A DNA stretch of 64,000 nt from Eutreptiella sp. 'Long Island Sound 2002' (Eukaryota > Protista > Euglenida): positions 132,370,001 through 132,434,000 of the forward strand of contig OZ038378.1 in the NCBI GenBank assembly GCA_964036045.1. Reading direction: 5' to 3'. Positions within the stretch are counted from its first letter, which is position 1. Each line of letters opens with the position of its first letter. Below the pieces are notes generated by a model that did no database searches, had not been told where the DNA came from, and was given only the letters and a program-made list of their open reading frames with translations. Both the position numbers and the translations under genes were made by a program. Shown one piece after another: positions 2,400-52,484 of the stretch.

Positions 2400-3640
2400 G
2401 GCACCCGACACAGATACAAGGATGTGCGAGCCGCAGACCAATTGAAGCTCAACCTCCTGAGGACACGGTTTTGTGTAGACAGGCCCAACCACGCCAGTGC
2501 ACTCGCAAACATCTGCAGAACCGCAAAGTTATCAACCACTACTGAAACCCCCGGCTAGCCCACCGCCCAAAAGAAGATTGTGCCGAAATCCCGGGCGCGT
2601 GGCTCGACTAATTGCTGGTTGCAAAAAAGTCCGGGGCCAATGCCGAACGTCCCCCCAACCCGGGCGCCCACAGTCCCACCCTCCAGCAACTTGCATCTGG
2701 ACCGCCGTCGAAAAAGACTTCGGTGTCCCGCCTCTTGGACGGCGACCGTATTATGGGGACAACCTAGCTCCTTGCCGCCATAACGATGGGCTTCACCAAA
2801 GAGTGGAGCAACTTGCGCGGCGTGTGATTCAAGTGTATGGGGGCCCACACAATGTGCGCCCACATGGACGCCAGAAAAGGCAAAATGTCCCAAGACGGCA
2901 TGGCCTCCCACAAGATGCGCAATACTAGCCGAAACAAACCCTTTTGCAAGCAAAAACTCACGCTGAAAAGAAGCCATCAAGCCACCAAGGCCGACCACTT
3001 GTCACTCGACCATGAGATAATAGCCCCCCCCCCCCCGAAACGGAATTGCTTGCCAATCCACTCAATACAGCTCAAGAGATTGAATTTACTCTTGGGGCTC
3101 ACCAAAGCGCCCTCGGAAACCGAACGGGTTACAATGGCGTCCGCCGCAAGCCTGGACGCGAGCGTTTGGAAGACCGATCACCAAAATATGATCATGATAA
3201 ACAAGGACGACAATGTCGCGCAATCGTGCTCTCTGGACTCCTTCGGTTAAAACCTCCCGGCATATCACTGGGTTGCATGCCCAATCGAAAGGCAACGCCT
3301 CGAATGCATACACCATGTCATAAACTCGAATATGGAAAGATTGGGGGTACCGCGGAGGCAGGACCAAACTCCAAAAAAATTACAGATATGAACATGACAA
3401 TCGAGAATCCCCCTCGCCAGGCATGCAAAGAAAGCAGCTCCCATGCCACATCGATGCGCGAGTCGGAATCGCCCTTCACCCTCGGCGGGGGGCAGTGCAG
3501 ATTTCTCGAGTCTTGCACGAGCATTAAAATAGGTGTCAACTCCACCGGCGCCCAATTGGGGAACGTTAGCACGCTGGGCATCTTTTTTGCTCTGTGCCCC
3601 ACCGGTGGCCTTTTAGGGGGTGCACTAAGGGGGCACATTT
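2400..3640 (-). pseudogene. DIRS-type reverse transcriptase + RNase H of element 1
   Basis: NFFWSLVLPP (after a frameshift), YAFEALPFDW..NPVIC, VLVYHDH (YxDD site, 3199-3188), LVSPKS...IEWIGKQF. RNase H motifs: VFFDGG (~2716-2701), NQQLVE, VVVDN, RVPSEYNVANLWSR. Confidence 0.85.
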
Positions 3641-4544
3641 CCCGCGGCTACTTGGGCGCGTGCTGTGCTAGAGACCCGTGCTTTCAGCTACTAGGAGCAT
3701 CATAGTGACCCCTGGCATAGGTTTTGACTTCTAACCACCCCCCGCCTCCAAGGGGCCTCCGGTCGACAGTTAGTTTGGGGGGGTAGTTGGCGTCCAAAAC
3801 CGAGCGGTCGCCGCACCCAAGTTGTGGTCTCAGGGCTCGGGGTTGGCTTGAAATTGGTTTGCTGCTGTTTTTGGTGAGGGGCTGGCAAGCTGCATGCGTT
3901 TTCGGTCTTCCTCATTTTTTGGGTTTGTTTTGTGTGGCTATGGACTCCTTCACTACGGAATTGTGGGCATGCTTCTAGCGTGCCAGCCCCAACCTGTTAA
4001 TTGCTAGTTATCGGTCGGATCCTCCGCCCTGGGTTGGGTCTGGTAGGTTGTATACACATACCCATCAGTATATGACCGGCGAGCGGGGAGGGAAATATTA
4101 CGGATTATGGCACTTGCACTCATTGGGCGGGGAGTACTAACACCTGTCCATGACCCAAACCCCCCCCCCCTCCTCGTAAACCACAACCAAGCACGGGCAC
4201 CACGGTTTCAATATAACAGTCACAGGGACTGTCACCATGATTCCCAACTTCTTCCCATGTCCGTCTCCACAACCTCCCACGGCAACGTTCCTTTTCGGGC
4301 ATCGAGTGATCTTCAGAAACGCCCGCTCCAGTCGTGACATGCATGTCCACGAGCACGGGCCTTGACTTTGGCTCTCTTCGCTCCAACACTCGGTCACCGT
4401 CCACGGGGAGAGGGGATTTCTCTGGTGAAGTATTGCGAGATTGCAGAGGACCACAAATCGAAAGGAGTGAGGGTCTTCCTCTTGATATTGGTGTACCCGA
4501 ACGGCCAAGGCAGTGCGCACTCCCCCTGATGATGAAGTGGGGGG

Positions 4545-5459
4545 GGGGGGGGATGTAGTCCGCTGCAACGCGGCGGGACCCCCACCTGCTTCAGCACTGG
4601 CCGACATCGATGGGTACCCCCATCCACTTGAGCAGGCGAACGCCGCCCCTACGCCAGCAATGCCACCAGTGCTCTTCGTACTCCGTTCCCGCGAGTGCCC
4701 GCGCGATCCGCTCCTCCAGCCAGGCCGGTCCATAGGGGCAAATGAAAATGGATCCTTTCTCACCGGTTAATCTGTGCTTGTTAAGCCGGTTGGACCACGT
4801 TGCCGCATAGGTGGCGAGGTCTCTTGTAAACAGCCTCGGGCTATTCTTAGCACACCTGAAACACATTGTATCTTCACCAAGTCCTCTTTGGCGCACTGAT
4901 ACCATCTCCACGACACGCAAGGCACCCACGAAGGAGAGCACAGCGAGTCCACAGAAGGACTAGTCCATTTTTTCGTTCAAAACTCGGATATAAGTTGCAG
5001 TGTCTCCCATCCCCCAAGCGTCCGCCGGCCATCATCGTCCCCTAGCAGCGAGTACTTGGCCATGCGCCACAACTTCCTGCTGACGATGGGCTCGACGAAT
5101 TCCATATCCTGGACCGCGCGGAGTACGTTGATGGCCCCTGGCACGGTGGTGTTTGGCGCCCGTTGTCTGTACAGCAACTGTATGTAGGCCATGACCAGTG
5201 TCTCTGGCTCCCGGTACTTCTCATCTCGCTGTAGGTTGGCGATCGCCCAAAGGTGGGTCGCCATTGTGTCCGTAAACCTCGACTGGCACGACGCGGCTGC
5301 CAGGGTGTCAAAGTCTTCATCTGGGCTGGCCCCCTTGAGTCCGCACCACCAATGTACCACCTCATCCCACATCCCGATTCCCGCTTTGAGCCGGAAAGCT
5401 CCCGCTTGCGTCTCTTCCACCTGGCTTTTTGCGCCCACCAGCAGCCGCGCGTCCCCCAA
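4545..5459 (-). pseudogene. Tyrosine recombinase of element 1
   Basis: SAM-like N-terminal ORF 4977-5459, then LSFVGALRVVE (box I R), HWWHCWRRGG (HxxR) and RWGSRRVAADY (catalytic Tyr at ~4557-4555). Confidence 0.9.
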
Positions 5460-5539
5460 CTCGATGCCATGGCTCCATCACCCAAAATGGGGGCAAGCCA
5501 CAAAGCACTGTTGCCCCCCCCCCCCCCCTTCCCTTGTTT

Positions 5540-6520: not shown

Positions 6521-7859
6521 GCAATGCGTTGTGTGTGTAAAGAGAACAACAAGCTGTCAGAGAAGAAATTACATGGTGCAAAACGTCACTTTCGGTGTGT
6601 CAAGCTGTAGATCTAGGCAAGAGCTGATGGCCCCAAGCTTAGGCCACGCAAATTGCCATACTAAAAAATGCCGTAGGCGTCCGACCAACAGCTTGAACCC
6701 CAGCTGGGGCCGGAAGCTTGTTGGGGGTCCGAAATGCCAATTTTTCTGTGGTCTTTTTGAGACGTGCAAAGAACTTTCCAGATATAGGGGGATCAAAAAG
6801 TGTGTACCTTGTTTTGGGCATTTGATTGATAGTACCGGATTGAGCTTTTGGTCCCGCAAGGATGCAGGAAAAGAGGCATAGTGGCTAAATTCTGCATACT
6901 TTTTCCGGGGCACCCTAAGGGAGGTGTTGTGGGCTGCAAACTAAAAATGTGATTGCGTGTACTTCTGGTGATTTGTAGAAGGCGCGTTGCACGTGTCCCC
7001 GGATAGTACACGCGCACTAGTTGGGACCATTTCTATTTGCAAGGGGAGACACAACGAAGCGAACACCCAATGGTCCCTTTGCTGAGAAGCAGTTGGGGCT
7101 AGCTGATTATAGCTAAAAACGGGATCTGAAAGCAGGAAAAATGAAGTAGAACAACCGGGGCAAGCTGCGAACCAACAAAATATGCATCTGAAGGTATCAG
7201 AGGTACTGCTACAAATGCAACACAGGGTGTACATGTGCAGAACACCTACATGCCACAGCTAGAGTGCACGCAACAAAAAGAATCGAAAAGAGGGCTAGAA
7301 GGCACATGCATGCATAGGTCACTTCGAAGGTGTGGCAGCCTGCTGCTTCGTGCTCCTCCATCCATCATAACCAAATTCCTTTGGCTTCGGACTCTCTCTA
7401 GGCTCCCACACAGTCGGCTCGATGTCCTCATCAGCAAATTTCTTTGCATTACCCTTCTACGTACCTGTGCCAGTTCTTGCTTTCCAACCACGCTGGATTG
7501 ACTTCGTGGTAGATGTGTCAAACGAACGTACTCTGTCCAGCTTCCGCTTGCCTCGCTTTCTAGGTTTTTCTCTCTAGACCTTCCGCGCTTCAGCCTCAGA
7601 CTTTCACAATTCCCCGGGTTCCTCCCCAAGATCATTGTCTTGCTTGCCAATCCTTTTAAGCTTGCCATGGCTATCAATAGGTGTACCGGACATCATCAGG
7701 TTGTGATGCTAGAAGCTTGTTGGCTTCCCTACATCATGCGATGACCTGCTGTAACAAATTAGGAATGCCTTGGCCACCAAGACAGCCAACAACGACAGAC
7801 GAAGGAGGGTGCTGGGCTCAAAGGAGGACAAGCAGCGGGTGAGGCAAGCGGTACTACCT

Positions 7860-46825: not shown

Positions 46826-47154
46826 ACCTTATACGGGCGAATGCGAGAATCATCGCAGACGCCATGCAAACCTCTGGAGAAAATGGAGACAAATAAAGCG
46901 ATTCGGCACACCTTTCCAAGCTGCCTGCCGGCGCTTAACACTGTCAGTTACATCACTGTGCGTGTGAAAGGATCCTAGCCTACTAGGCGGGTCTGCAGGA
47001 TTCAAATCCGTGCTCACCCTGAAAACGCCCATAGGGCGATCATTCCAGCTCATGAGTCAGAAGAGCTGGCGAAATAGCCTCTGCTGCCTGCGCAAAAAAA
47101 TTCCCCCACGCATGCCTAAAATATGTGCCCTACCGACGTCGCTGTCTGTGGCTA

Positions 47155-47896
47155 CTACAACATAAGGCAATCGCATATAGCAACCCAAGCATACAGCTCT
47201 GCCTGCTGTAAAGTACTGATCCACGTGGGTGCCTTACGGCAGAGCCATCGCCTGCCCTCCCTCACAATCCCGATCCTGTACCTGCCCCTCGTACTCCTCT
47301 CAGCGGCATCAGTGAAGAAAACACACTCTGCCGCAGGCAACTGAGGCAACCAGGGCGAAGGTGCAAAGCACTGCGGGGTCAGGGCAAGGGCAATTGCAGT
47401 CATCAGCGCCCTACGCATGCCTTTTCTAAAATCACAAAAATCGCCCAACTTCCAACAGTGTCCCCCAGCAACAAATGGGGCCAGCCCTGCATTGGGCCTC
47501 AGAGCCCACTCAAGCTTGCCCAACAGTCGCGCAGCCAACCGTGCGCTCAGCTTATTTTGGACAAGGCCCAAAAGCCAGAGTGCAACAACTCCATCAATAA
47601 CCCCGGGCTTATTCTCTACAGTCATGGCAGCAGCAGAAAACTGCTTCCCAATAAAATCCAAGGTCTGGACAGGTTCAATCACACTCTTAGGGTTAATCAG
47701 GAACCCTGCCCGGCCCAAAACACGGCTCACGCGGCGCGCAGCAACGCGGTGATGGTGTCTACCCACAGCAGACAGCAGGACATCGTCCAGGTATGTGACT
47801 CCTCTCGCCCGTAAGTCACGCAGGGCCCTCCTGCCTAGGGCGGAAACAAGCTTCTGGCAAAGCACTGGCGAGTATTTCTACCCAAAGGGCAGACAT
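47155..47896 (-). pseudogene. RT C-terminal half + RNase H of element 2
   Basis: CLPFG*KYSPVLCQ, TYLDD (47793-47782), GFLINPKS, FIGKQF, FFTDAA, QQAELYA. Confidence 0.95.
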
Positions 47897-48645
47897 GGCC
47901 TGGAGCAGAGCACCACGAGGGGATACGCGGCAGCACTCCGGCGGCTGCGGAAAGGAAGTCGGGAGCAGTTTGGGGCGAGCCCACGCCAAGTTCTGGAGTT
48001 GGAGATCAAGGAAACGGTGGCAAGTGAGAACGCGGAGGGAAACCTCAAAACGTTATTGTCCGCCTGCAGGCCGTTGGACAAGTTACGGCTTCATCCCAGC
48101 ATTGCCGAGACAGGTGACTGGCAGGTGGTCAAGTGGTTGGCCAAGTGACGGATACGTGGCAAGTCAACCCTGGTAAGCTGGGCGCCGATGGAATTGTTAG
48201 TCTGCCTGGCGGAGCAGATTGTGGACCCAGCAAGCGCCGAAGTGGTGGCGTTGGCCTGCATCAGCGTGGCATGCCTGCTGCGAGTGGGAGAGGCGGCCAC
48301 AGTGCGCACCAGTGCACGTGGAGACGTCCGGTTCAACGGCAAAAAAGGACGGCCGGGCATCTGGGATGTGGAGGTGGGTCCGTGGACGAAATGGTGGGTG
48401 CCGTTCCTCTGGAAAATATGACGGCTCAGGCACGGGCCTGCCGACTTGCCCTTTTCCTTCCATGACGCGACGAAGTTACAGGCAGGAGGGAAAAAGATTG
48501 TTGGAGGGTCGGATTGCGAAGGGTAAAGGTGGCATGCCCTGCGCAGGTGTGGAGTGGCGGTCGTGTAGTGCTCGGGAGTCCGCATCCAGACGGTCATGCT
48601 CGCGGGAGGATGGGTCATCCCCAGTGTCGCCAAGGATTACTGCCA
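47897..48645 (+). pseudogene. Tyrosine recombinase of element 2 (within the inverted segment)
   Basis: QSTTRGYAAAL (SAM-like), CLLRVGEA, RWHALRR (~48527-48547), AGGW...AKDY (Tyr 48638-48640). Confidence 0.92.
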
Positions 48646-49241
48646 CCCAACGCACGCGTTGTCCTGCGAGAGAAGGATGCAGCTCCCGGTTCCGATGCAC
48701 TGGTTGGGGGGGGGGGAACAGGCGGCGCGTTCCAGTACAGGTCAGAAGAACAACCTGTGGACAGTCTGTGGGCGCGATGGATCCGAGCGGATCTGCGAGA
48801 GAGTGCACCTCAGCGATGCCCTGGAACTGAGGCGAGTGCGGTCGACACAAAGAGACGGAAAAGAACCAAATCCTAGAGCCCACGAGTGCCACGCGCGCAG
48901 AGTACGACAGCGAGTCAAGCAGCGAAGGAGAATACCGGTTCATGGAGTGTGACCGCTGACGAATTGGAGGGCTGCGGCAGGCAAGTGGAAAGACTGATGC
49001 GGCTGCCGGATGCCCCGCGTAGGCAAGAAGGCCTTGTGGCAGGAGGGCTGCTGGCGCTGGGCAGGCTGGCGGCTACTACTGACCCGCGCAAGGGGTTGGG
49101 AAGACTAACACGGGCCCTGGAGACCATCTCGGAGGAGGGCCTCAGTCAAGCGTCGGAGGAGTCATATCATGATGATGAACAGCTGGAGCCGGTGAGCCTG
49201 CAGCTTGCAAGGCGGGGGATCGGAGAAGTGGGCAAGGTTAA

Positions 49242-49673
49242 ATGGCGCATACCATTTGGCGGCGTTGCGTGCCGAGGGACCTGTTGCGTACGTACCAGGC
49301 ATGGGACAAGAAGTATGCCAGTGGTATACCAATGGTGGACAGCCCAGCCGTGGGTGACATGCTAAGCTCTATCCGCAAGGCGGGACCTTTGAAGAGGTGC
49401 AGCGAGGCCGGAGGTACCAGCAAAGCGAGGGTCATTCCTAAGAACTCGCAGACTTGTGCACTCATTTTTGAGTGTGTTGGTTTGAACGACGCAGGCTGGC
49501 GTAAGCCGCCCAAATTCCGTTTGCCCCAGGTAGAACAAGTGACTCGCCTGATGGCGAATGCGGGACATAAGGCTTTTCTAGGGAAAATAAACCTCAGCAA
49601 TTGTTTTTGGTCTATTCGCATGCCGTACCGGTGGTGTCGGGTTTTCTGTGTGAACACGCCCCAGGGCTGTTTC
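49242..49673 (+). pseudogene. RT N-terminal half of element 2 (within the inverted segment)
   Basis: ARVIPKN..CALIFECVGLN, PPKFRLP, KINLSNCFWSI; it stops at PQGCF just before the expected LPFG. Confidence 0.9.
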
Positions 49674-49794
49674 GACAGCCACGAGTGCCCAGGCTCTGAC
49701 TCGATGGCATCCAGGTACTAATGCGCGGCCTTAGGGAGTACGAGACCCCCTCTGTCCACCTCATCCAATGCGCCCCCCCCCCTTGCTCCCGTAG

Positions 49795-51846
49795 TCAGGC
49801 CCCACGGCCAAAGGCCTCGGCCTCGTGGTACCACTGCCGTTGCCCACACTTGGAGCATGGCACCTCTGGCGGGTTGGTACAATCGATCCACCGCTGGCTC
49901 TCCTTGGACCAAAACTCCCGTTGCCCGTCCGCGACCCTGATTGCCACCTTTCCTTTGTTTCCGGCGCTCGCAGGCTGTGTGGCCTTTTGGCGTCCACTTT
50001 TGCCATTGGACTGGGAGGATGACGAACTGTCCGGGCTGTCACTGAACTCGCTGGAACTTCCGCTGCAGGAGTCAGTATCCCTTGACTTGTGATTCTTACC
50101 CTTCTTGTTCTTGTGGCCAGCCGTTTTCGCCTTCTTGCGTTCCATGCAGCGCTTCTTCTTTTCTTTCTTGTGCTTCTTCTTCCATTCTTCATTCAAGTAA
50201 GCACTCCCCTGGCGATCCATCTTCCGCATGACTTCCCATATGGCATTTGCCAGGCTATGCTCGTCCGCTCTCTCCGGCTGCTGCAGGTAGTCACGAAGGG
50301 CCTTGGTGAGTCTTACCGTCCATTTGGCTGCACCCGGTCGCTTCCTGATTTTGCGCACGTTCTCCAAGTTCAGGACCTCGTACAGGCTCTCTTCCTTGTC
50401 GCTACTGTCAAGCTCTCGTGGGTGCTCATCGTGTTCTTTTCTGTTCGCTCCTTCCAACCTGACCTGATGCTCGAGCTCGTCGTACTCTCTGCGGGCCTCC
50501 TGCAATGCATACCGGTCATCAGGGTCGTGGTACTCCTCGCGGCGAACTTGCACGTACCGCATCACGGAGAAGTCCAACAGGGCGCCTGCATACGTCTCAA
50601 AACATCCCGACAACATCCACATATGCTCTGGCTCCAGCCCCGGGCAGTTGATGCTGACGTCTATCAACAGAGAGGGCAAACTGCCTGCAAACCTGCCTAT
50701 CATCTTTTCTATGGCTCGTGTCAATGCCCCGGCTGTCGTCGGCGAACCCGCCAAATACTCCCCCCAGGGTTTGTACTTCTGCACACGGAAGACGGCCAGC
50801 GCCGCCATCGGGTGTGAGTCCCCAGCTCCCCCCGTTAGACGGGCCCTCATTTCCAACAGCATCCCAGGTATGACACCGAGGTCTCGCAAGCTCACGTTTC
50901 TCACCAACATCGTAGCCCCCGCAATAAAGATGACGTTCGCAAGCTGCTCAGGACAGCATGCCGCAAACTACCTGTAGTCCTTGTCCAGCTGCACGGGCAC
51001 CTGGTGCACGGCTCCGCGCAGGCCGCGCAGTAGAAGGTGGCCATCCCATACAAGCAATTGCCCTTCCGGGTCCAGTGGCCGCTCGTCTGCACCCTCCGGG
51101 AAGAACACCGTCTTGTATACCTCAGCGAAGCCGTCACCATTCTGTACACTGTCCCACTCATTAAGCACCGTGTCCGAGTGCCAACCTTCTACTTGGTCTT
51201 GCCACCATTCCACGAGCTCTTCCTCAGCCGCACAGTCCACACCCCCAAAATCATCTTCCCCTGCTACAGGGGGGCTACCAGGCACATCCATGCCCAGCTC
51301 TACCTCGCTTTTGCCGCTGCTGCACTCCCAGGGCTGCCGGACCCCGCCCAGATGGGCACGCATCGCGCTTGGCGAGCAAGGGCGTAGGCCATTCCCCTGG
51401 CAAGTGTGCACAATTGCCCCCTGTGCGTGTGTCACCGCCGTGGGGCCATAAGTCACCTGCGTACCCAACTCGGCTGCGCTCCTGCCGCCGCTGCACCCCC
51501 GCCCTTGCCAGCAGCCGTCACCACTGGACCGGGATCGAGGGGGGCCAGACCTGATGAGCCTCTCACCGTCGTCACAGTGGATTCCTTCAACCGGTCGGCC
51601 TGCTTCGCGGGAAACACCGGCGTGTGTCGCCGGTGTGGGGTCACCACACACCTCCATACCAAGCTCCACTGCTCTCCTGCCGCCGCTGCACCCCCGCCCT
51701 TGCCAGCAGCCGTCGCCACTGGACCGGGACCGAGGGAGACCAGACCCGGCGAGTCTCTCATCGTCGTCACAGTGGATACCATCGCCCGGCTGGCCTGCTT
51801 CGCGGGAACCGCTGGCGTTTGCCGCCGCGGGGGGGTCACCAGGCAC
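49795..51846 (-). pseudogene. ORF1 of element 2: repeats + acidic region + ubiquitin-like domain + gag-like region + K/S-rich tract + CxxC knuckle
   Basis: ORFs 50968-51846 and 49795-50910 are in frame, separated by one TAG. Ends PPEVPCSKCGQRQW. Confidence 0.8.
50827..51042 (-). other. Ubiquitin-like domain (~71 aa) ending in RLTGG
   Basis: HLLLRGLRGAVHQVPV...IFIAGATMLVRNVSLRDLGVIPGMLLEMRARLTGG parallels the ubiquitin pattern QIFVKTLTGKTITLEV...[34 protein letters not shown]. Confidence 0.75.
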
Positions 51847-52010
51847 CTCTGTACCCAGTTCTCTTGTGCTCCTGCCGGCGCCGCATGGCCGCCATCGCCT
51901 GCAGTCGCCGTGACTGGTCTTGGTCGGGGCGGGGCTGTCGTCTGATCAAGCGAGTTCCTCACCGTCATCACCGTAGGGTCGATCTCCAGGCCGGCCTTCC
52001 GCGCGGGCCT
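51440..52010. repeat. 195-bp (65-aa) tandem repeat, ~2.5-3 copies, in the ORF1 5' region
   Basis: cgtcgtcacagtggat at ~51567 and ~51762; a diverged third copy at ~51957. Confidence 0.85.
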
Positions 52011-52484
52011 CACCGGCTTGTATCGTTGCGGGTGAGGTACAGGGCACACCTGCACCATGCTCCCCGCGGTACTTTCTGCCTCCGCATCCCCGTTCGCGCC
52101 CCCAATTGCTTCGAGCGGGCTGTGCTTGAGGCAGGCCGCTATCGATGTCGCCCACGATCACTCCACTGTCGTCGTCACGACGCCCACCGCGGGGCGGCCC
52201 GGCTGCCCCCGCGTCCTAATATCCCAATCGGCCGGTCTGGTCATTGTCGTCCTTGACCACTTCTCCACGTTGGCGAGCCGTCGACGCTCCTACGGCATGA
52301 GAAAGGCACCCGTAGTCGCGGGGTGCCTCCCATCGGGCCTGTCTGCTCATGTAAAAATGAAAAACGGACTGCACAGGGAAAAGGAAGCAACGTGCAGTCC
52401 AGAACTACAGTCATGGCGGAGACTGCTGCTGTCCCTGCTACCGACAGCCTCCATCAGAACTTCAATACAGCGCACAGGGGGACA

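Follow-up and report, generated by a model that had tools for sequence, protein, structure and literature searches.

ORF1 of a family of YR retrotransposons in the euglenid Eutreptiella sp. 'Long Island Sound 2002' contains a conserved segment of 83 codons, which ends in Gly-Gly and is joined in frame directly to a gag-like core. This segment is a selected protein-coding domain and not a chance ORF. With moderate support, it probably has the ubiquitin (beta-grasp) fold. We give about an even chance to the reading that ORF1 is a precursor composed of a leader, a diverged ubiquitin-like domain (UBL) and gag, and that a host ubiquitin or UBL hydrolase cuts it after the Gly-Gly. The copy from which the analysis started is element 2 of the window (the whole stretch of 64,000 nucleotides analysed: assembly GCA_964036045.1, contig OZ038378.1, positions 132,370,001 to 132,434,000). 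Its features, together with those of element 1, are as follows, in window coordinates.

49795..52350, minus strand: ORF1 of element 2, 851 codons, from ATG at 52350 to TGA at 49797-49795, interrupted by three premature stops
52218-52216 (TAG), 51948-51946 (TGA) and 50970-50968 (TAG), minus strand: the premature stops of ORF1 in the window copy
51259..52350, minus strand: N-terminal leader; its start, MSRQ..., is kept in all subfamilies and is followed by low-complexity 195-nt repeats
51076..51258, minus strand: end of the leader, acidic and Trp-rich (EELVEWWQD...DEWDSV...), kept in all subfamilies
50827..51075, minus strand: conserved block of 83 codons (LDPEGQ...RLTGG), the probable ubiquitin-like segment
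51045-50827, minus strand: the part that aligns with ubiquitin residues 1-76 in the profile alignment
50968..50970, minus strand: TAG inside the probable UBL, a C>T mutation in the window copy
50827..50832, minus strand: Gly-Gly codons at the end of the RARLTGG tail, where cleavage is proposed; Ala follows
49798..50826, minus strand: gag-like core, 343 aa, with homology to ORF1 proteins of other gag-YR-RT elements
46928..50006, minus strand: remainder of element 2 (YR start, inverted block, RT/RNase H)
50006-49673, minus strand: YR start
47867-49691, plus strand: inverted block with YR and RT pieces
47892-46928, minus strand: RT/RNase H
5459-4594 and 3379-2980: detectable YR and RT, respectively, of element 1

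Translation of the minus strand from 51042 to 50827 gives the sequence reported in a preliminary description of this DNA, with TAG at 50970-50968, RLTGG at 50841-50827 and then AGDSHPM. The conserved block begins at 51075, however, 11 codons before the start given there (51042). A single TAG had been counted. This is correct for the stretch from 51846 onwards but not for the full ORF1, which has three premature stops when read from the ATG at 52350. With these stops and an inversion in pol the window copy is a dead member of its family, and natural copies with an open ORF1 are present elsewhere in the genome. The gag-like core includes a motif KRPGA(P/A)KW and a stretch rich in Ser and basic residues, and its end (49881-49798) resembles a Cys/His knuckle. 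No gag is detectable in element 1 of the window, although its YR and RT are.

In the 2.28-Gb assembly, the window sits on contig 1, which is of chromosome scale. A 501-nt probe identifies at least 442 candidate places in the genome, of which 42 were scored, with identities of 84-92%. Using a protein probe, hundreds of near-identical copies, many with open frames, were located on contig 18 between 15.2 and 20.3 Mb. Within this young chromosome-18 cluster dS is approximately 0.02. The assignment to the YR retrotransposons, already proposed in the preliminary description, agrees with the presence of Pfam RVT_1 and RNase_H domains, a YR ORF with HxxR...GGW...Y, and split direct repeats. A full natural copy (L031) carries ORF1, a YR ORF in another frame and RT/RNase H (Pfam RVT_1, 3.8e-15; RNase_H, 6.3e-4). 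Its split direct repeats are of 150 nt (1591-1740 and 7388-7537, 97% identical) and 99 nt (7293-7391 and 7617-7715, 99%). The RT of the window copy is 88% identical to that of L031 and matches RVT_1 at 0.014. The YR signature of L031 (ORF 4068-5480, ...WHALRRCGAA...GGW...Y) was spotted by eye; the Pfam Phage_integrase match of this ORF is weak (E 0.053, profile positions 110-169), and the YR region matches those of element 1 of the window and of a second family (L074, see below). Another ORF of L031 (3835-6051) was considered as a long N-terminus of pol and rejected, as its first 560 or so amino acids appear to be out of frame and YR lies in another frame. No integrase domain was found by Pfam in the ORFs of L031. 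Nor is there a peptidase family among the Pfam hits of any ORF of the window copy, L031 or L017, in agreement with the expected lack of an aspartic protease (a highly diverged protease would escape this search).

The UBL-bearing homologues found in the databases all belong to an ENA assembly of the same species, and a scan of JGI metagenomes yielded none. The sole RNA trace of the element is one contig of 164 nt from an estuary metatranscriptome. Three read runs carry the element at genome-like depth, probably as DNA, while the RNA run yields only this single short contig.

The 83-codon block (51075-50827) is collinear in all copies. At the position of the internal TAG (50968), 25 of 29 other genomic copies carry Gln (CAG), two carry TAG through the same C>T change, one has Arg and in one the codon is deleted. 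Since most copies read Gln here, the open frame is the original state, and programmed read-through of the TAG can be ruled out. A short intron around the TAG was also considered and rejected: the sole GT..AG pair covers 28 nt, and in the other copies the frame is open as it stands. The Gly-Gly is intact in 27 of the 29 copies and in every listed copy of the young contig 18 cluster, so that the conservation of RLTGG, like that of the open frame, is upheld. When natural copies of three subfamilies are compared pairwise (at dS of 0.4-0.6), dN/dS is 0.13-0.21 for the 83-codon block, 0.17-0.25 for the 41 codons that precede it and 0.10-0.15 for the first 42 codons of gag. The constraint on the block thus resembles that on gag. 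These values are conservative because dead copies contribute neutral changes. All comparisons in the analysis use natural sequences, and the pieces of broken frames were searched separately. The ending itself, in the form RLxGG or KLxGG, is found again in relatives at 40-50% identity: diverged lineages of the same genome retain KLHGG followed by Ala, RLSGG followed by Val and RLKGG followed by Ala. Of eight diverged lineages, most of them decayed, four have lost the first Gly (DG, RG, AG and AE).

The preliminary description had called the segment ubiquitin-like. Profile comparison lends this moderate support, whereas searches of Pfam and the PDB with HMMs are negative and AlphaFold is uninformative. 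Using hhalign, the family profile was compared with a profile of host ubiquitin (from L033 and five other loci of the same genome). The local alignment (score 21.1) places the last 34 columns on ubiquitin residues 43-76, with the Gly-Gly at 75-76. The global alignment (score 14.4) extends over ubiquitin 1-76 with one gap of four residues in the helix. In 100 column shuffles the local score is 10.3+/-2.2 (maximum 19.8) and the global score 3.4+/-2.3 (maximum 11.4), and none reaches the observed value. In this alignment, 13 of the 16 buried core positions of ubiquitin are hydrophobic, and L8, G10, L56, D58, R72 and L73 are kept, as is a motif S/T-L-x-D-hydrophobic-x-V. The tail differs from that of ubiquitin in having Arg in place of V70, Ala in place of L71 and Thr in place of R74. 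A HMMER profile of the family ranks three independent ubiquitin domains, in register, roughly among the top 25 against 1503 unrelated decoy ORFs. In a language-model look-up with one member of the family, the named neighbours (0.86-0.89) all belong to the PF00240, Rad60-SLD or TUG families; a 45%-identical relative gave no match. A leader sequence, MRARLGG, was also considered as a duplicate of the UBL tail and ruled out, there being no nucleotide similarity.

The segment might instead be a domain of some other fold that is specific to this family and forms the N-terminal part of gag or a linker, or be largely disordered, with its LxGG ending a coincidence. Several results favour this. The probability that HHsuite itself assigns to the ubiquitin alignment is only 2-14%. 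None of 18 family members matches Pfam PF00240, even at E<=10, and the same is true of the pieces from the window (one member matches another beta-grasp family, YukD, at E 0.17). A PDB search with the family profile is empty and one with the whole ORF1 returns nothing meaningful. AlphaFold2 twice gave no confident fold (pLDDT 38.6 and 42.3, with alignments of 22 and 32 sequences). These alignments are shallow (Neff approximately 2.4) because every homologue in the databases is from the same species, and the failed folds consequently neither refute nor support a fold. The weak model has an order of elements, E-E-H-E-3(10)-E, that fits ubiquitin without confidence, and Foldseek finds no match for it. 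We nevertheless consider a non-ubiquitin segment unlikely: it would leave to chance an end-to-end alignment that is in register and outscores all shuffles both locally and globally, the retention of the hydrophobic core and of the S/T-L-x-D-hydrophobic-x-V motif, the rank of the three ubiquitin domains among the decoys, and the presence of a true ubiquitin at the same place in a sister family.

The sister family (L074 and P0127-P0134) has the order UBL-gag-YR-RT, as does the window family. Its UBL is recognised by Pfam as ubiquitin (PF00240, 3.1e-12, 46.5 bits), is 39-40% identical to host polyubiquitin, and ends LLGRVRGG, followed by MPEAG, straight before the gag region. In a third element (L070), a repeat leader is followed by ubiquitin (5e-21) ending RLRGG, then Val and a different protein. 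A leader precedes ubiquitin in all three of these families. The UBL of the window family is no closer to that of L074 than to ubiquitin. The hhalign score between the two UBLs is borderline, at 15.8 against a shuffle maximum of 15.6, which is a further point for a segment unrelated to ubiquitin. Alignment of the two gag cores is confined to the C-terminal knuckle. Since the two UBLs are no closer to each other than the window-family one is to ubiquitin, repeated capture is plausible; the sequences would fit separate captures as well as very fast divergence.

The strongest part of the case, stronger than the evidence for the fold, is the junction with gag. The segment ending in Gly-Gly stands in frame and directly before the gag core. 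An exhaustive HMMER search identifies distant gag homologues (24-40% identity) that extend over the entire gag core, N-terminal helices and Cys/His knuckle included, and have no UBL. In these the Met start occupies the position that follows the Gly-Gly of the window family, which substantiates the earlier suggestion that the module is lineage-specific. Two examples were verified on the contigs that carry them. L075 has a stop three codons upstream of the Met, and its protein begins M-AGPNFDE... where the window family has GG-AGDSHPM.... L076 also has an upstream stop, and the first Met that follows it is at the equivalent place. A third relative of the gag, from a metagenome contig (P0083/L067), carries a 2A motif, GDVETNPGP, that is aligned within eight residues of the Gly-Gly of the window family, and another 2A further upstream. 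The gag core of the window family itself has no conserved Met: at +7, one subfamily has Leu in place of Met. The residue that follows the Gly-Gly is A, S, V, T or M and never Pro. A language-model look-up with the gag core gave no usable match.

We propose that ORF1 of this gag-YR-RT/RNase H element would be a three-part precursor, consisting of a leader (about 120 aa in the young subfamily, which is without the 195-nt repeat region, and about 445 aa in the subfamily of the window copy), a UBL with the ending R-x-R-L-x-G-G, and the core of gag. The cut behind the Gly-Gly would be made by a C-terminal hydrolase of the host that acts on ubiquitin or UBLs (of the USP/UCH or ULP type). Cleavage would free gag with an N-terminus, Ala-Gly..., that is the same as that of the homologues without the module after their initiator Met. 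The UBL would therefore be a cleavage module operated by the host, as is ubiquitin in the ubiquitin-ribosomal protein precursors, and would fill the role that 2A has in the relative. Cleavage, the hydrolase responsible and what the leader does are all inferred. Because the equivalents of V70, L71 and R74 differ, standard deubiquitinases (DUBs) may refuse the tail and a specialised protease may be needed.

The same deviations, which may block DUBs, also speak for a UBL that is real but uncut, that is, an integral domain of gag that, for example, recruits ubiquitin-binding machinery (ESCRT-type, proteasome shuttle or autophagy receptors) or aids the folding of gag. Many eukaryotic proteins contain integral UBL domains. 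These are usually without a terminal Gly-Gly, however, and uncleavable N-terminal ubiquitin fusions are degradation signals (the UFD pathway). Ubiquitin fused to a retroviral Gag can reportedly stand in for late domains in budding (PMC2958808), and this also favours an integral domain. Such a domain would not account for the recurrence of RLxGG or KLxGG across diverged lineages or for the coincidence of the Gly-Gly both with the natural N-terminus of the homologues that lack the module and with the 2A site in a relative. We regard this reading as improbable. It is very improbable that the leader-UBL is the active product after cleavage, as a transposon-encoded modifier whose exposed Gly-Gly is conjugated by host E1/E2/E3 to gag or host proteins: the leader found before ubiquitin in all three families, for which a pure cleavage role has no obvious need, and the conserved equivalents of R72 and L73 would suit a modifier, but it is unusual for a modifier to carry an extension of 120-445 aa, and the length of the leader varies threefold between subfamilies.

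Returning to the cleavable precursor, a wider reading is that the protease-less YR retrotransposons of this protist lineage have repeatedly come to rely on the ubiquitin system of the host for processing their ORF1 polyprotein. We hold this tentatively, at somewhat less than an even chance. At least three families have a leader and a ubiquitin or UBL ending in Gly-Gly before a structural protein, and relatives have a 2A at the same boundary. The UBL would then be an exchangeable 'cut here' cassette, and the leader-UBL perhaps a second product. The maturation of ORF1 products in YR (DIRS-type) retrotransposons is poorly understood. The placement of a UBL ending in Gly-Gly exactly at the gag N-terminus, with a true ubiquitin and a 2A at this point in relatives, leads to a simple question that can be tested: are host deubiquitinases needed for gag? 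If the proposal is correct, a retrotransposon would join the few genetic parasites known to employ captured ubiquitin for cleavage, a host factor limiting the activity of these elements would be indicated, and the diverged UBL could serve in seeking its cognate protease. For annotation purposes, this is an example of a domain missed by Pfam.

Judged from its sequence, the window family appears to be a YR element of a known kind with an unusual ORF1. It resembles the VIPER/TATE- and Ngaro-type elements (order DIRS) in having a gag-like ORF1, a probable YR and RT/RNase H, with no protease or integrase found. It shares the order gag-YR-RT with VIPER and TATE; this order, and the YR retrotransposons in general, are described in PMC6681497. 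Further likenesses to YR elements are the split direct repeats of L031 and the Cys/His knuckle-like end of ORF1. What is called 'gag' in the YR (DIRS-type) elements owes the name mostly to its position, and these elements have no known protease (PMC6681497). The words ubiquitin and protease do not occur in that article, and we found no description of a ubiquitin or UBL domain in the ORF1 of a YR retrotransposon, or of the UBL-gag arrangement, in the full-text literature searched, whose coverage is incomplete. What distinguishes the window family from VIPER, TATE and Ngaro is the leader and the probable UBL ending in Gly-Gly in front of the gag core.

Among devices for separating fused proteins, 2A 'ribosome-skipping' peptides are alike in that upstream and downstream products are separated without a protease, and one is present in the gag relative (L067/P0083). 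They differ in that 2A acts by co-translational skipping, whereas post-translational hydrolysis is proposed for the UBL module. 2A has been reported in non-LTR elements; no report of 2A in YR elements was found in the literature searched.

The ubiquitin-ribosomal protein, FUBI-eS30 and polyubiquitin precursors provide a parallel to the proposed arrangement: a domain ending in Gly-Gly is fused head-to-tail to an unrelated cargo, the mature N-terminus directly follows the Gly-Gly, the residue after it is not Pro, and no dedicated protease is encoded alongside. In the window family, by contrast, the UBL lies behind a leader of 120-445 aa and below the level of Pfam detection, the cargo is a transposon gag and cleavage is putative. 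Pestiviruses are another parallel: captured ubiquitin allows host hydrolases to make a protein terminus that the virus's own enzymes do not. As in the cytopathogenic pestivirus insertions, a genetic parasite would here make use of captured ubiquitin. Those insertions are sporadic RNA-virus recombinants with near-identical host ubiquitin, whereas the module of the window family is fixed, diverged and under purifying selection. Finally, the L074-type element of the same genome shares the gene order and the leader in front of the UBL, which likewise ends in Gly-Gly straight before the gag region; it differs in that its UBL is clearly ubiquitin while that of the window family lies beyond the reach of Pfam.

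The ORF1 leader of the element that fuses a ubiquitin-like segment (UBL) to gag differs between subfamilies. In the window subfamily it includes about 320 aa of 195-nt repeats (51259-52150), which are entirely absent from the young chromosome-18 subfamily (L053 and L057). The only leader parts common to both are the first ~68 aa and an acidic, Trp-rich stretch of ~52 aa that precedes the UBL. Directly upstream of the 5' repeat of the full natural copy (L031) lies the following feature:

L031:663-1589, 84-nt tandem repeat in about ten copies, followed by an inverted repeat of 44 nt

The arms of the inverted repeat are 95% complementary, with a 2-nt spacer. The tandem array contains no stops in a six-frame reading and 'open frame' lengths are therefore inflated.

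The UBL-gag element is present in hundreds of near-identical copies on contig 18 of the host assembly (G000:C18:15.2-20.3 Mb, loci L051-L066). These occur in both orientations with a dS of ~0.02, and ORF1 is open in many of them; some partial ORF1 copies are spaced at 1602 nt (L059). The cluster may reflect accumulation at a centromere-like site, or a segmental amplification that happened recently.

Ubiquitin is also fused to other proteins in this genome, in an element distinct from the UBL-gag family (L070) and in a single long ORF (L068):

G000:C15:12135000-12142000, 5756-3420 and 3549-1, minus strand, L070 element
G000:C22:23909000-23916000, 6831-3160, minus strand, L068 ORF, 1224 aa, intron-free

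In L070, a Pfam ubiquitin domain (5e-21) ending RLRGG|V stands between an upstream repeat leader of 295 aa and a downstream protein of ~400 aa. The next ORF, of at least 1183 aa, gave no match in Pfam or PDB; by eye, it has a YR-like tail and candidate H...D...C motifs of the Cys-protease type. L068 is another internal ubiquitin fusion, of host type: the domain (ending RLRGG) is preceded by a kinase-like N-terminal half and followed by a C-terminal region that, by eye, resembles a 2OG-dioxygenase.

The host also carries very large polyubiquitin arrays at G000:C15:29.319-29.380 Mb (loci L034-L044), with others at C14:38.30-38.33 Mb and C27:18.72-18.74 Mb. They comprise more than 100 head-to-tail ubiquitin units of 228 nt, and the frames stay open for as much as 1701 aa. 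The ubiquitin of the host contains PSDSIDNVKQKIQ, where it differs from the animal sequence, which makes a protist genome probable.

A distant gag relative was found in a metagenome contig:

L067:441-2288, JGI metagenome contig, single ORF with two 2A motifs

The motifs (GDVEINPGP and GDVETNPGP) stand one on each side of a ~150-aa piece, the second being at the gag N-terminus. This piece contains CWCNPPF, by eye an N6-adenine methyltransferase-like motif.

The other YR element of the window, element 1, comprises:

5459-4977, minus strand, YR N-terminal domain
4959-4594, minus strand, weak YR match
3379-2980, minus strand, weak RT match

Neither gag nor UBL is detectable upstream of these domains in element 1 (2980-5459, minus strand). 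It has in common with the UBL-gag element the order YR then RT.
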